From contig CBFFSA010000004.1 of NCBI GenBank assembly GCA_965644495.1, positions 806,001 to 870,000 on the forward strand: a stretch of DNA of 64,000 nt. Direction: 5' to 3'. A program made the position numbers and the translations under genes. The notes below the pieces were generated by a model that had not been told where the DNA came from, did no database searches, and saw only the letters and a program-made list of their open reading frames with translations. Positions 10,443-58,501 of this stretch are shown here, in pieces (position 1 is the stretch's first letter; each line of letters begins with the position of its first letter). Source of the DNA: Perkinsela sp. CCAP 1560/9. Its lineage: Eukaryota > Protista > Euglenozoa: Kinetoplastea.

Positions 10443-11657
10443 GGTGGGATTGAACGAATAATGTACACTTTTTTTAAATAATTTTAAATTTTTATGAAAT
10501 CCTTTTTTGTGTTTCCTAGGGTGATATGTATGAATTTTTTGGATTATTAGTCAATTTTTATCTTAAAATTACGGCTAGTATTGCTTCTCTAAGGTTTCAA
10601 TGAACTGCACAGGTTGCCCTCGTTTTGATTGCGCTGCTCAAATTCGCTTGACTTCAGTCGGCTCTGCCGCAGAGGAAACGTGTATGTTGTGGATGCGAAA
10701 CTACAAACTCACTGTACAAAGCGTTTCCTGCGAGCGTGGGCATGAGCGGGTACTGTGTAATCTGAAGGGAGGCAAGTTCCACTGCCCAGTACGCTCCTGC
10801 CGCAATTTGATGTCACAGGACGGTCCTCTCAAGCACTCAAAGACAAAGGTGTCCGCAAAGCAGATTCTAATTGGGATCGTTTCCTTTTCTTATAGCATGC
10901 TGGGAACAGAAGTTGCAAAGGAAGAAGAAGTCTCTCAAAGAACTGTAGTTTTGCAACGCCAAATTATCGAAAAATCATTGTCTGAGGTTCATAAAATCCG
11001 TCAGCGGAACGCCGAGGGAACAGTATCCTTTATGCAAGTCGATGAGACGTGGTTCTCAAAGATCAAGCGAGGGGGAAACAACCGAAACCAGCGGGTACGC
11101 GCTGGTGGTAGCCAGATAGTTCAGACTCTGGCCGAATGTACTCGTGACAGCAAGCTGACAGAGATACATGTCACGCCTGTGCCTCAAAAAAGCGCAGAAC
11201 ACTTAATTCCCCCCATCGAGGCTATGTGTGCCTCCTCGCGTACGCGGATCCATACCGACGGGGCCAGGCACAACAATTTTCTTGAAGGAAAGTATCAATG
11301 GGATTCGGTTATCCACAGAAATGAGTGGATCAGTGATTCCGGTGTGCACACTAACACCGTAGAAGGAGCAAACAGCATGTTGAAGAGAACTTTGACGCGT
11401 TGTGGCGGCCAACTTGGTAGAAGCAATGAAAACCGGCATGAGCGTGTGCGCGCCCTGGCAGAAAAATGTAACGGATCTCTACGGGTGAATGGAGCAAATG
11501 TTTTGAAGCGAGTTTTGGAGGATCTTCGCGTGTATTGTGCGCATTATGTTCTGCAGTAAGAAGCATTTTTTTTGTTAGATAATGATCGAAGGGAAAATAT
11601 CGTCTTTTTAAAAATTCTGAAAACTGAAATTTTGTACATTATTCGTTCAATCCGACC
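10443..11657 (+). mobile_element. Merlin (IS1595/IS1016-like) DNA transposon, structurally complete
   Basis: 25-bp TIRs GGTGGGATTGAACGAATAATGTACA / TGTACATTATTCGTTCAATCCGACC (1 mismatch). 8-bp TSD AAGTATAC at 10435-10442 and 11658-11665. Single intact transposase ORF. Confidence 0.95.
10600..11559 (+). CDS. Merlin/IS1595-family DDE transposase
   Basis: Cys-rich N-terminus, then MQVDETWF, IHTDGARH, VIH, GVHTNTVEGANSMLKR: the DDE_Tnp_IS1595 motif order. Confidence 0.92.
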   Translation: MNCTGCPRFDCAAQIRLTSVGSAAEETCMLWMRNYKLTVQSVSCERGHERVLCNLKGGKFHCPVRSCRNLMSQDGPLKHSKTKVSAKQILIGIVSFSYSMLGTEVAKEEEVSQRTVVLQRQIIEKSLSEVHKIRQRNAEGTVSFMQVDETWFSKIKRGGNNRNQRVRAGGSQIVQTLAECTRDSKLTEIHVTPVPQKSAEHLIPPIEAMCASSRTRIHTDGARHNNFLEGKYQWDSVIHRNEWISDSGVHTNTVEGANSMLKRTLTRCGGQLGRSNENRHERVRALAEKCNGSLRVNGANVLKRVLEDLRVYCAHYVLQ

Positions 11658-51534: not shown

Positions 51535-52911
51535 CAGGGGTGAAAATCCCATGGTGGGGGGGGTCTAAAATTCGTAAAATTTGTCCAATTTTGGAAAATA
51601 ATAGCGCGTTCGAGAGCTCTCGCAGAGTTGTATGTTTTAAGATAGGCAGTTTGCGGTGGTTAGGGGGGTACCCCCCTTTGATGGAAGGGTCAAAAACACG
51701 ATTTGCAAATTTGAAAAACTGTAAAAAATGGTCAAACATTACCCTTAATACCCACAGGAAGACCCGTTTCGCTCAATAACGATGCGACAACGCTTGCGGA
51801 AACTGCTCATCGTGTTAATACATTCTTGCTTGCGTTCTGATTGTAATCTTTCGAACGCTGTCTCAATGGCCGATACTAATTCAGCCCGATTCTTGGGTCG
51901 AAGATCATTTTTGATCCTGTCCATGGTCCCCCAAAGGTTTTCAATGGTGTTTAAATCGGGGGATTTTGCAGGCCAAGAGAGTACATTAATACCTTCGTTG
52001 CGAAAGGTTGTTCGCGCAGAATTATGAACAGGACAATTATCAAGGATACCAAGGTTCTAGCTCTCCCTGCTGTTCCTTGGCGGGGTCAGTCTTCCGGCAA
52101 AGGTAAGTAGTAATTTTGTTTCGTCCCCTACCGCAAGTGAACTTCTTCTCATCGCAGAAAACAATTTGTCTCAGTTGGGTATCTGACCAAGTGAGCATCT
52201 CAGAACAAAAATGCACTCGTTTCCTCTTGTGTTCATCGGTCAGTGCGGGCTTTCTTTTTAAAGTTCGCATGATCATACCATGGCTCTTCATGGCGTTAAC
52301 CAAAGTTGGTCTTGAACACTGAAATCCAAGAGAAAGCACAACTCTATGGAGTGCACACCAGTTCTCAGTCCCGTACGGGAGGTCACGGTATCCCTCATCA
52401 ATGAGGCGGATAGCTGCTTCGTGCAGCGCAGGGGTACTGACAGGAGATGGGCGTGAAATAGGAGAGCTTTCCACGTCTCCAGTGTTCTCATAGCGTATCA
52501 CAAGATGTTTTACTGTATTTTCGTGGACGCCGAAGTTTTGGGCTGTCCGAGAATAGGACCCTGTCTCAAGATAATCTGAGACAAGAAGCATACGGTGACT
52601 TGGTATCACCCGTGCGGGGGAGGAATAGGACCTGTCGCTGAGTACTCCACGTGAGGTTCGGGAACGAATCCGTTTCTGGGGCATATAGTGCTAATATTGA
52701 CTGAAAAACAGCTAAAAACTGAAAAAACGTAAATTTGGGCAAGAAACAAAATCATGATTTTTTTTGTCTCATCGTTTCATGTTGAGTCACAGGCCGCAAA
52801 TAGTGCTAAAACATACAACTCTGTGAGATCTCTCGAATGCGCTATTACTTTCCAAAATTGGATAATTTTTACGAATTTTAGACCCCCCCCACCACGAGGT
52901 TTTCACCCCTG
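51535..52911 (-). mobile_element. Tc1-like DNA transposon with ~105-bp TIRs and TA TSD
   Basis: TA|CAGGGGTGAAAA...TGTATGTTTTA and TAAAACATACA...TTTTCACCCCTG|TA, enclosing a transposase pseudogene. Confidence 0.93.
51745..52684 (-). pseudogene. Tc1-like DDE transposase with internal deletion and frameshift
   Basis: HTH + KPALTDEHKRKRVHFC + IVFCDEKKF in 52684-52040. Continues in another frame as LDNCPVH...WPAKSPDLNTIENLW...SCGY* to 51745. Confidence 0.9.
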
Positions 52912-56557: not shown

Positions 56558-56720
56558 CGCGAAAGCGAAGCCGGATACAAATATCGCCCGCAAATAATAA
56601 TCACACGACGTCACTATGGTGGCTGGGAAGCAGATTTAATTGAAGGTGCAAAGAAAAGTTAAAGTGATCCTGACCCTTTGTGAACGGCAGAGTAGGTTTG
56701 TTGTCCGTGTAAAAACAATG

Positions 56721-57688
56721 GGGTTAACTATGGTGAAAATGTACCCTAAAAATAGAAATTTTTAAATTTCGTTGTAATGAAAAACGAATGTGATTTTAGG
56801 TTATTCCAAGATATTCTAAGACACTTTAAGACGATTTTCCGCCATATACGCAATAATAATTATCGTAGCCCTCTAAGATCACCACGCGTAAACTCAGATT
56901 TCGAAAAAACTGGGTGATCTTCATTGACAAGGAGTTTCTTCATTAAAACGAAGTAAACATGCTTACATCTATTACCGCGACGTCCGTCAGGACAAGTGCA
57001 TTCAGTGCCCCCAGTACCAATGTACATGTATATCGTATAATGGCGGTCCGTAGATCCTTGAATCATGTACTTATAATTTCCCATCTCAGTCATTCCATAT
57101 CTACGCTTTAGGCGGATGTGCTCCGACATTGCTCGGCCTAATCGTGTACTGGGTGCCTCAGGGTCGGAGTCATCACTCAGGTCATCAGAATCCATGTCAA
57201 CAGGGCCTTCAGTTATATCGTTCGAGTCGCATGAATTCGATTCATTTTCGTCCACTGCGCTATTTCCTTGAGCAATCAGCAGCCAACTCCGAAATTTGGC
57301 GACTATTTGGGATTTAGAACGGAAAAAAGGGTCAAATTCGGGTATGTTTAAATAGCATTTAGAGCCATCTTCAAGCTTCTTGAAGCTTTGCTTTTTACGA
57401 GGCCTCTCTCCGCAGCGAATACAAGGTGTATTTGCCCCAAAACAGTGGTTCTTTAGCCAGAGAAAGACATTTTCCGCTATTATTTGCAAAATTGAAGTGA
57501 CAAAGACTAGGCAAGCCAACGTGGTGCACCCCGGACAATCCATACAGAGAAGAACGGATCAAAAACTCAAGAAAAAACGGGTGCAGTCAATAAAATAACC
57601 GAATGCGATGATTATGAGAACATTTTTCTTCAATTTTTTTTCATGAAAAAATAAAACTTTTAGGGTACATTTTCACCATAGAATACCC
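56721..57688 (-). mobile_element. Non-autonomous Merlin-type element carrying a chimeric ORF
   Basis: 31-bp TIRs GGGTTAACTATGGTGAAAATGTACCCTAAAA / TTTTAGGGTACATTTTCACCATAGAATACCC. 8-bp TSD AAACAATG at 56713-56720 and 57689-57696. Confidence 0.9.
56860..57543 (-). CDS. Merlin-transposase N-terminus fused to a SWIM zinc finger
   Basis: MDCPGC..C...AE...WLKN...C.RC...P...SK....AK parallels the 10600 transposase N-terminus. Then an acidic linker and IQGSTDRHYTI...CTCPD.....CKHVYFVL (SWIM). Confidence 0.75.
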   Translation of the reverse strand: MDCPGCTTLACLVFVTSILQIIAENVFLWLKNHCFGANTPCIRCGERPRKKQSFKKLEDGSKCYLNIPEFDPFFRSKSQIVAKFRSWLLIAQGNSAVDENESNSCDSNDITEGPVDMDSDDLSDDSDPEAPSTRLGRAMSEHIRLKRRYGMTEMGNYKYMIQGSTDRHYTIYMYIGTGGTECTCPDGRRGNRCKHVYFVLMKKLLVNEDHPVFSKSEFTRGDLRGLR

Positions 57689-58501
57689 AAACAATGTTAC
57701 ACTGAGTATGCGAAAATCTTGATATCCGGAACACACCCATATTTTTCAAATTTTTGTTACGCTGAGTACGACAAAAATGTGTTGCACTGAGTATGACAAT
57801 CCACATACAGTGGACACATACAGTGTGTATAAGTGGGGCCACGAAAACTGATTAGCCTCGCATTTTAACCTTATGAGGCCGTATGAGCTCATTTTTGTTG
57901 CCAACGAAAGATCTCATTCTGAAAAAATTCTACACTATTTAAAGTACAAAAACATTCGCCGGAAAACGTTTCCAACGAGTCGGAAAACTGAAAATATTAA
58001 GATTTTGCAATGTGGAAAATGGGTCTAAAATAGTAATTTTTCCTGCCTACACTCCAAAAAGTACTCGAAAAGTAGGTCTTCATACCCAGTATTCCCACCT
58101 CCACGCTCGCATTGTAAATTTACAACGAGGCGCGTGGGAATATTCTATAACGTGTTCATACACGTATACGCTTCGTGACACTCGTTCAAAAAAACGCACT
58201 CCCAGAGACAGAGCTCTCCGAGAGACGGTTCATCATGCGTGCTGTATCGGCAGTAGTTATCACGCGGTCTTTCGTATGCGTAGAGAATGCGAACAGGATA
58301 AGAACACTTTTCTGGGGATAACTGGCGGCATATTTTTTGCGATACGAATTTTTGTACTAACTTTCGCCGCCGTTGAAATTCTCCTGCAATGGAGAGTCTC
58401 CAGGTAGTCCCTTTGAGCGTTCAAAAATCATCACCGCTGCTGATGTTGTTGAATGATTTCGCCGCTGTTGAAATTCTCCTGCAATGGAGAGTCTGCAGGT
58501 A

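Follow-up and report, generated by a model that had tools for sequence, protein, structure and literature searches.

The 968-bp insertion at positions 56721-57688 of the window (the whole 64,000-nt stretch of DNA that was analysed) is very probably a non-autonomous internal-deletion derivative of a Merlin transposon whose transposase natively bears a SWIM module. Since full-length copies encode both the acidic linker and the SWIM module behind the DDE domain in one open reading frame (ORF), linker and SWIM are native transposase sequence, and the element is therefore best explained as a plain internal deletion, without any capture of a host gene. As an element it is routine; of more interest is its parent lineage, Merlins whose transposase natively ends in a SWIM module of the cellular SWIM-RING type.

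The insertion is single-copy, and its ORF lies antisense to the surrounding genes. The following features were assigned (positions of the window):

56713-56720, no strand: left copy of the target site duplication (TSD), AAACAATG, by direct reading; paralogous repeat copies have the octamer once
56721-56751, plus strand: terminal inverted repeat (TIR), GGGTTAAC..., 3' of the ORF; AATGTAC occupies its positions 18-24, and its core was counted 24 times genome-wide against 0 in a reversed control
56752-56859, minus strand: 3' subterminal non-coding region, matching the ends of other family copies at 72-79% (query positions 1-227)
56860-57543, minus strand: intact 227-aa ORF, stop included, the DDE-less remnant of a Merlin transposase
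56863-57153, minus strand: SWIM module, residues ~131-227, from the Pfam SWIM match, the comparison of copies, the structure model and a structural match
56938-57009, minus strand: CxC...CxH core of the SWIM module
57154-57261, minus strand: acidic linker, residues 95-130, predicted to be disordered (low pLDDT); it aligns to the acidic stretch behind the DDE domain of full-length copies
57259-57264, minus strand: deletion junction between codons 94 and 95 (AAT/AGC) with a 3-nt AAT microhomology, from codon comparison with loci L049, L033 and L032
57262-57543, minus strand: N-terminal module of the transposase (residues 1-94), presumed to bind the ends; it is rich in Cys and contains a helical segment
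57544-57657, minus strand: 5' subterminal non-coding region; full-length copies share its distance of 145 bp between end and ATG
57658-57688, minus strand: TIR on the 5' side of the ORF, GGGTATTC... (reverse complement); the 5'/3' asymmetry at positions 5-8 is common to other copies
57689-57696, no strand: right copy of the TSD, AAACAATG

The two 31-bp ends agree at 28 of 31 positions, the mismatches being positions 5-7; both begin with GGG and both carry AATGTAC at positions 18-24, much as a sequence-only reading of the region had described them. Within the window the 26-nt end pattern was found just at the two ends of the element, with 0 occurrences expected from 100 shuffles. Other measurements of that reading were reproduced as well, namely the perfect 8-bp TSD, the distance of 145 bp between the ATG (57543) and the right end, the corresponding 157 bp in the Merlin element used for comparison, and the frame of 227 aa, which is free of stops throughout 56860-57543 (minus strand). 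The comparison element is real: it occupies positions 10443-11657 of the window, AATGTAC stands at positions 18-24 of its 25-nt ends, and its 319-aa ORF contains the Merlin-type DDE domain DDE_Tnp_IS1595 (PF12762). This intact-looking, SWIM-less Merlin of 1215 bp, whose ends agree at 24 of 25 positions, belongs to another lineage than the 968-bp element. Merlin transposons are recognised by TIRs of at least 24 bp starting with GG, by a TSD of 8-9 bp and by homology to elements that encode PF12762. The element has TIRs of 31 bp starting with GGG and the 8-bp TSD AAACAATG (its full-length relatives likewise have 8 bp), and both halves of its ORF as well as both subterminal regions match PF12762-encoding elements. 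A Mutator origin was rejected, as the relatives carry PF12762 and an 8-bp TSD, and not the MULE DDE domain and the TSD of 9-11 bp by which MULEs are recognised.

The genome assembly has 110 contigs with a total of 21 Mb. Within the window almost every long ORF is on the plus strand, without visible introns, and plus-strand genes go on past its borders; this is a kinetoplastid-like polycistronic layout. The element is located in a repeat-rich gap, 163 bp downstream of an ORF of glycosyltransferase family 4 (GlcNAc-1-P-transferase-like). Its right flank is a copy of another repeat family, about 25 bp of which are kept in the left flank. Six paralogues of this repeat elsewhere read ...CCGAAA-AAACAGTG-TTGCACTGAG... 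and contain the octamer once. Because these paralogues serve as empty sites, both the insertion and the 8-bp duplication are confirmed. The hosting repeat (57689-57800; paralogues L081-L086) contains a motif like TGTTGCACTGAGTATG several times and shows a roughly 4-fold higher short-read depth. DNA contigs of the runs X1 and X2 span the insertion; the short contigs of run X4 cover the element partially and bridge its right end. An empty-site joint was not seen in the DNA contigs of X1, X2 and X4, which come from one study and probably from one strain. At position 57252 sample X1 has A for C, changing Asp98 of the acidic linker to Tyr (D98Y), and a second difference is found at 57612, in the 5' leader of the element. 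Elsewhere in the window, a 214-aa ORF at 52040-52684 (minus strand) has a Tc3-type transposase HTH (PF01498, E 6e-8) and represents a Tc1/mariner-like element.

Pfam recognises a single domain in the 227-aa ORF, SWIM (PF04434) at residues 179-202 (E 5.8e-5; 23 bits against a Pfam cut-off of 19.6 bits), and the zinc ligands C182, C184, C193 and H195 are all present. The DDE catalytic domain that an autonomous element would encode was not detected; the residues missing from the ORF are the equivalents of positions 95-303 of a 427-aa full-length transposase, including D137, D206 and E245. The N-terminal 94 aa match no Pfam family and may, judging from their Cys pattern, form a zinc ribbon or an HTH. 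The sequence-only reading had noted a Merlin-like N-terminus. This holds true for the full-length SWIM-bearing Merlin copies of the genome, to which these 94 aa are 64-85% identical. The resemblance to the 319-aa Merlin protein that had actually been compared exists as well, but is weak (26% over 87 aa, pairwise E 3e-4).

The decisive evidence comes from the full-length relatives, located by genome searches that used the 227-aa protein and the PF12762 profile as queries. The full-length loci (for example C1:1347486-1348763, C9:112438-113724 and C5:212077-213303) match, in this order, residues 1-96 of the ORF, PF12762, and residues 92-226 of the ORF, the latter with ~60% identity. In three copies that were read, a single open frame of 417-430 aa contains the N-terminal module, the DDE domain, the acidic linker and the SWIM module; translation of the full-length ORFs yields an acidic stretch followed by TRLGRA...CTC..CKH... 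up to the C-terminus. Pfam places PF12762 at residues 133-262 and SWIM at residues 371-400 of the 427-aa protein, in which D137, D206 and E245 are present. The SWIM module of the element is 60-66% identical to the C-termini of the full-length transposases. Thus, the statement that the DDE domain had been lost in frame stands, but its replacement by a foreign linker and SWIM module does not, since both are native to the full-length transposases.

Seven elements of 1566 bp are present in the genome. Because these copies are 98-99% identical to each other, recent activity of the SWIM-bearing Merlin lineage is suggested. Their 31-bp ends begin with GGGTCAACTGCAGTCAAAATGTACCC on the 3' side and with GGGTAATATGCAG on the 5' side, and differ from those of the 968-bp element at 6 of 31 positions. 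The ATG is located exactly 145 bp from the end, the same offset as in the 968-bp element. A perfect 8-bp TSD was found at three sites (AAATATTT, AAAAGGTT and GATAATCT), and at a fourth site the duplication is one base off.

A comparison at the DNA level, in the orientation of the ORF, locates the deletion. Positions 191-426 of the element are collinear with positions 191-426 of the full-length copies, and positions 542-799 with 1148-1399. In terms of protein, the 227-aa ORF corresponds to residues 1-94 fused in frame to residues ~304-427 of the full-length transposase. The codons at the junction are CAA GGA AAT/AGC GCA GTG, where the relatives have CAA GGA AAT/TTG (or GGT AAC/CTG) at the 5' breakpoint and GAC AAT/AGC GCG GTA at the 3' breakpoint. 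As the 3-nt AAT microhomology occupies the same codon phase at both breakpoints, the remaining ends of the gene were fused in frame.

The closest relative, L032 (C1:1788452), is 90% identical at the nucleotide level and 85% at the amino acid level over the N-terminus, and directly behind residue 94 it has decayed DDE sequence with frameshifts. Because L032 continues into DDE sequence past this residue, the element's subfamily once had full-length members. A different Merlin of ~1.2 kb is nested in the 5' leader of L032 (G000:C1:1786952-1790236). With at most 2 mismatches allowed, the end core CTATGGTGAAAATGTACCC was found at 24 places in the genome and nowhere in the reversed control. Paired ends with this core were found just in the 968-bp element and in one 723-bp copy, and the genome contains no intact full-length member of the subfamily that has it; the argument for parentage is based on the decayed sister copy and on sister subfamilies that are ~70% identical in DNA. 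Other deletion derivatives, all decayed, have different junctions: L077 and L078 have a junction in common, which joins approximately residue 101 to residue 372, and L004 and L005 form a further pair. A junction common to L004/L005 and the element was considered and rejected. Since the L004/L005 sequence continues downstream of the element's 5' breakpoint, these copies are independent deletions. The element's own junction was found in no other copy of the genome.

A course of events can be proposed on these grounds. The parent would have been a cut-and-paste transposon of the Merlin type (IS1595/IS1016-related), with a four-part transposase composed of a Cys-rich N-terminal module, a DDE_Tnp_IS1595 core, an acidic linker and a C-terminal SWIM module. 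The transposase lineage would have gained its SWIM module once and long ago, from a cellular protein of the SWIM-RING type, and this copy would have played no part in that gain. A deletion of ~209 codons took out the whole catalytic core, with its ends at the 3-nt AAT microhomology; from the signature of the junction, abortive gap repair after excision, or replication slippage, is the most likely cause. Either the element or its full-length parent would have inserted into a copy of the other repeat, giving rise to the 8-bp duplication. On its own the element is immobile, and it would move only if a related full-length transposase recognised its ends.

There is no sign of selection on the 227-aa ORF, which is most likely a passive by-product of the deletion. 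If expressed, the protein would be catalytically dead, and would retain the presumed end-binding N-terminus together with the SWIM module. The KP repressor of the Drosophila P element is such an in-frame internally deleted transposase, with an N-terminal end-binding part and without catalysis, and the likeness of the 227-aa ORF to it would be one of architecture only. One may therefore ask whether the DDE-less product is a working regulator of the KP kind, damping transposition of the family through binding of the ends by the N-terminal module or through poisoning of transposase multimers by way of SWIM, be it selected or not. We regard this as unlikely. It is true that the 227 codons are intact whereas the relatives L004/L005, L077/L078 and L032 are full of stops and frameshifts, and a fully open frame is mildly unexpected for a purely neutral relic. 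The ORF has also kept the conserved N-terminus and a SWIM module with four zinc ligands and a confidently predicted fold. Compared with L032, its N-terminus yields dN 0.069 and dS 0.17, that is, an omega of 0.41. However, this value mixes the period as an active transposase with the period after the deletion, and it comes from the one usable pair (n = 1), synonymous sites between subfamilies being saturated. Nor is the open frame improbable under neutrality: in a simulation a 681-nt frame stayed open with a probability of 0.52 at 2.5% random substitution and of 0.28 at 5%. In the lineage of the element, C53S, R64Y, K66N and G71D have arisen at N-terminal sites that are conserved in nearly all of ten other copies, which in this alignment looks like relaxed constraint. 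The ORF is antisense to the plus-strand gene array, a possible RNA run (n = 1) gives no coverage of the locus, the element exists as a single copy, and an intact transposase of its own subfamily is absent. The more far-reaching combination, an undescribed and recently active Merlin-SWIM lineage together with an expressed DDE-less copy as its natural dominant-negative regulator, would likewise be improbable.

That the ORF is a domesticated Merlin-derived host gene and no longer part of a transposon is highly improbable. An intact, single-copy ORF and an insertion that is present in 3 of 3 DNA samples would fit domestication, but the samples belong to one study and probably to one strain. Moreover, the element retains its two ends and a perfect TSD, as an old domesticated gene would not be expected to, and the ORF lies in a repeat-rich gap, antisense to its neighbours. 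As regards orthologues, a word-index protein search with the 427-aa relative returned as its sole match a protein that is 99% identical and presumably from the same genome.

The type of the SWIM module was analysed with a profile built from the Merlin SWIM modules, which was run against the PDB and against 1.84 billion representative proteins. In the PDB the profile matched the SWIM+RING structure of MEKK1 (9p40) with E 0.007 over 76 positions. The protein search gave 434 matches, and among the best 149 of these, 125 have the Pfam SWIM domain, 82 zf-RING_2 and one PF12762; no MULE domain appears in the 25 of 28 Pfam families shown for these neighbours. The alignment with SWIM-RING proteins is collinear over ~90 residues, including a helical tail behind the finger. 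An AlphaFold model has pLDDT values above 90 for residues ~130-227. The best structural neighbour of the 227-aa model is the SWIM region of ZSWIM8, with a weak Z score of 4.7; a wide structural search gave nothing usable for the N-terminal module, and a Foldseek search of the PDB with the whole 227-aa model gave nothing below E 0.3. The assignment of the element's SWIM to the cellular SWIM-RING/MEKK1/ZSWIM type and not to the Mutator type is thus supported, in agreement with the ZSWIM2/MEKK1-like character that had been recognised at the outset. A RING is absent downstream of SWIM in the 227-aa ORF, which stops ~30 aa past the finger, and PF13639 matched beside none of the located Merlin-SWIM copies.

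It was this kinship with cellular proteins (82 of 149 neighbours with zf-RING_2, MEKK1 at E 0.007) that spoke for gene capture, the 'Pack-Merlin' of the sequence-only reading, in which a cellular SWIM(-RING) fragment replaced the DDE domain and made a chimeric gene; we give this hardly any credence, for the family's full-length transposases have linker and SWIM behind an intact DDE domain, the same order recurs in a distant metagenomic relative, residues 92-226 share ~60% identity with full-length Merlin copies (65% in the C-terminal ~100 residues) and ~30% with cellular SWIM proteins, and no host SWIM-RING donor gene was found in the genome, where every SWIM-like sequence detected is inside a Merlin copy. 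The alternative that the same reading had set against capture, a deletion product of a transposon natively bearing SWIM, is close to what was found, except that the parent is a Merlin and not a Mutator-like element. Thereby the proposed cargo system is removed.

The fusion of SWIM and transposase is, on comparison of the copies, old, because it is common to subfamilies that are saturated at synonymous sites and to environmental relatives. The metagenome contig L088 (Ga0169931_10138547) encodes the N-terminal module, PF12762 (29.6 bits), the acidic linker and SWIM; it comes from another organism and is nearly full length, with one frameshift. A second environmental sequence from another organism, L075 (ERZ27247375 k141_1523418), is a Merlin-SWIM with a different internal deletion, and has a possible 5' end beginning with GGGTATTC 101 bp ahead of its ATG. 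The SWIM-less Merlin transposases of the same genome (L061-L070; 378-412 aa) have C-terminal tails rich in Asp, Glu and Ser. As these acidic tails resemble the linker before SWIM, the comparison suggests that the SWIM module may have been appended behind a tail such as the SWIM-less Merlins carry.

As usually described, a Merlin transposase is a bare DDE protein, and we found no account of a Merlin lineage that natively bears a SWIM module. The compact format of 1.2-1.6 kb with a single ORF, the 8-bp TSD, the GG ends and the relationship to DDE_Tnp_IS1595 are common to the family studied here and the Merlin superfamily (Feschotte 2004; PMC8101967), to which the parent lineage adds a C-terminal SWIM module of ~95 aa behind an acidic linker. 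As to C-terminal zinc fingers, PMC8101967 mentions solely the ZZ finger of some dinoflagellate copies, and SWIM is absent from its text. Among 89 kinetoplastid genomes the same study reports Merlin as inactive relics only, in Bodo saltans and Perkinsela, whereas the present genome has 109 PF12762 matches and near-identical intact copies. DNA transposons thus appear to be abundant and recently active in this kinetoplastid-like genome. Most of the PF12762 matches listed for the 21-Mb genome (G000) are in stop-free open frames. Twelve PF12762 matches at G000:C2:618440-637295 cover profile positions 57-138, are spaced exactly 1692 bp apart and lie nearly all in 241-aa open frames; they represent a tandem Merlin-derived half-domain gene or repeat.

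The manner in which the element arose has close precedents. Ds derived from Ac, deleted P elements and deleted mariner elements have likewise kept their ends and subterminal regions and lost the transposase core, likewise with breakpoints at short microhomologies and with several independent deletion forms beside full-length copies. The 968-bp element differs from them in that its in-frame deletion has left an entire ORF, and that it exists in one copy, without a MITE-like burst. With Pack-MULEs it has in common the short format and the ends placed around a non-catalytic ORF; unlike theirs, its internal sequence is derived from the transposase and not from the host.

The parent finds a parallel in the transposases of MULE/Mutator elements and in the archaeal IS6-type transposases, in which the DDE core is likewise followed by SWIM. 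In contrast to MULE and IS240, the catalytic family of Merlin-SWIM is PF12762, its TSD has 8 bp, and its SWIM groups with the SWIM-RING/MEKK1/ZSWIM proteins. One paper that mentions both DDE_Tnp_IS1595 and SWIM ties SWIM to MULE proteins and not to IS1595. Among the language-model neighbours of the 427-aa protein are archaeal IS240+SWIM clusters; with scores below 0.9 these are a lead only, but they point to an origin of the DDE-plus-SWIM arrangement in other transposase families as well. The Merlin-SWIM lineage is a second independent case, besides the Mutator-like elements, of a DDE transposase that recruited SWIM, and its natural deletion variants can be used to ask what the SWIM finger does.
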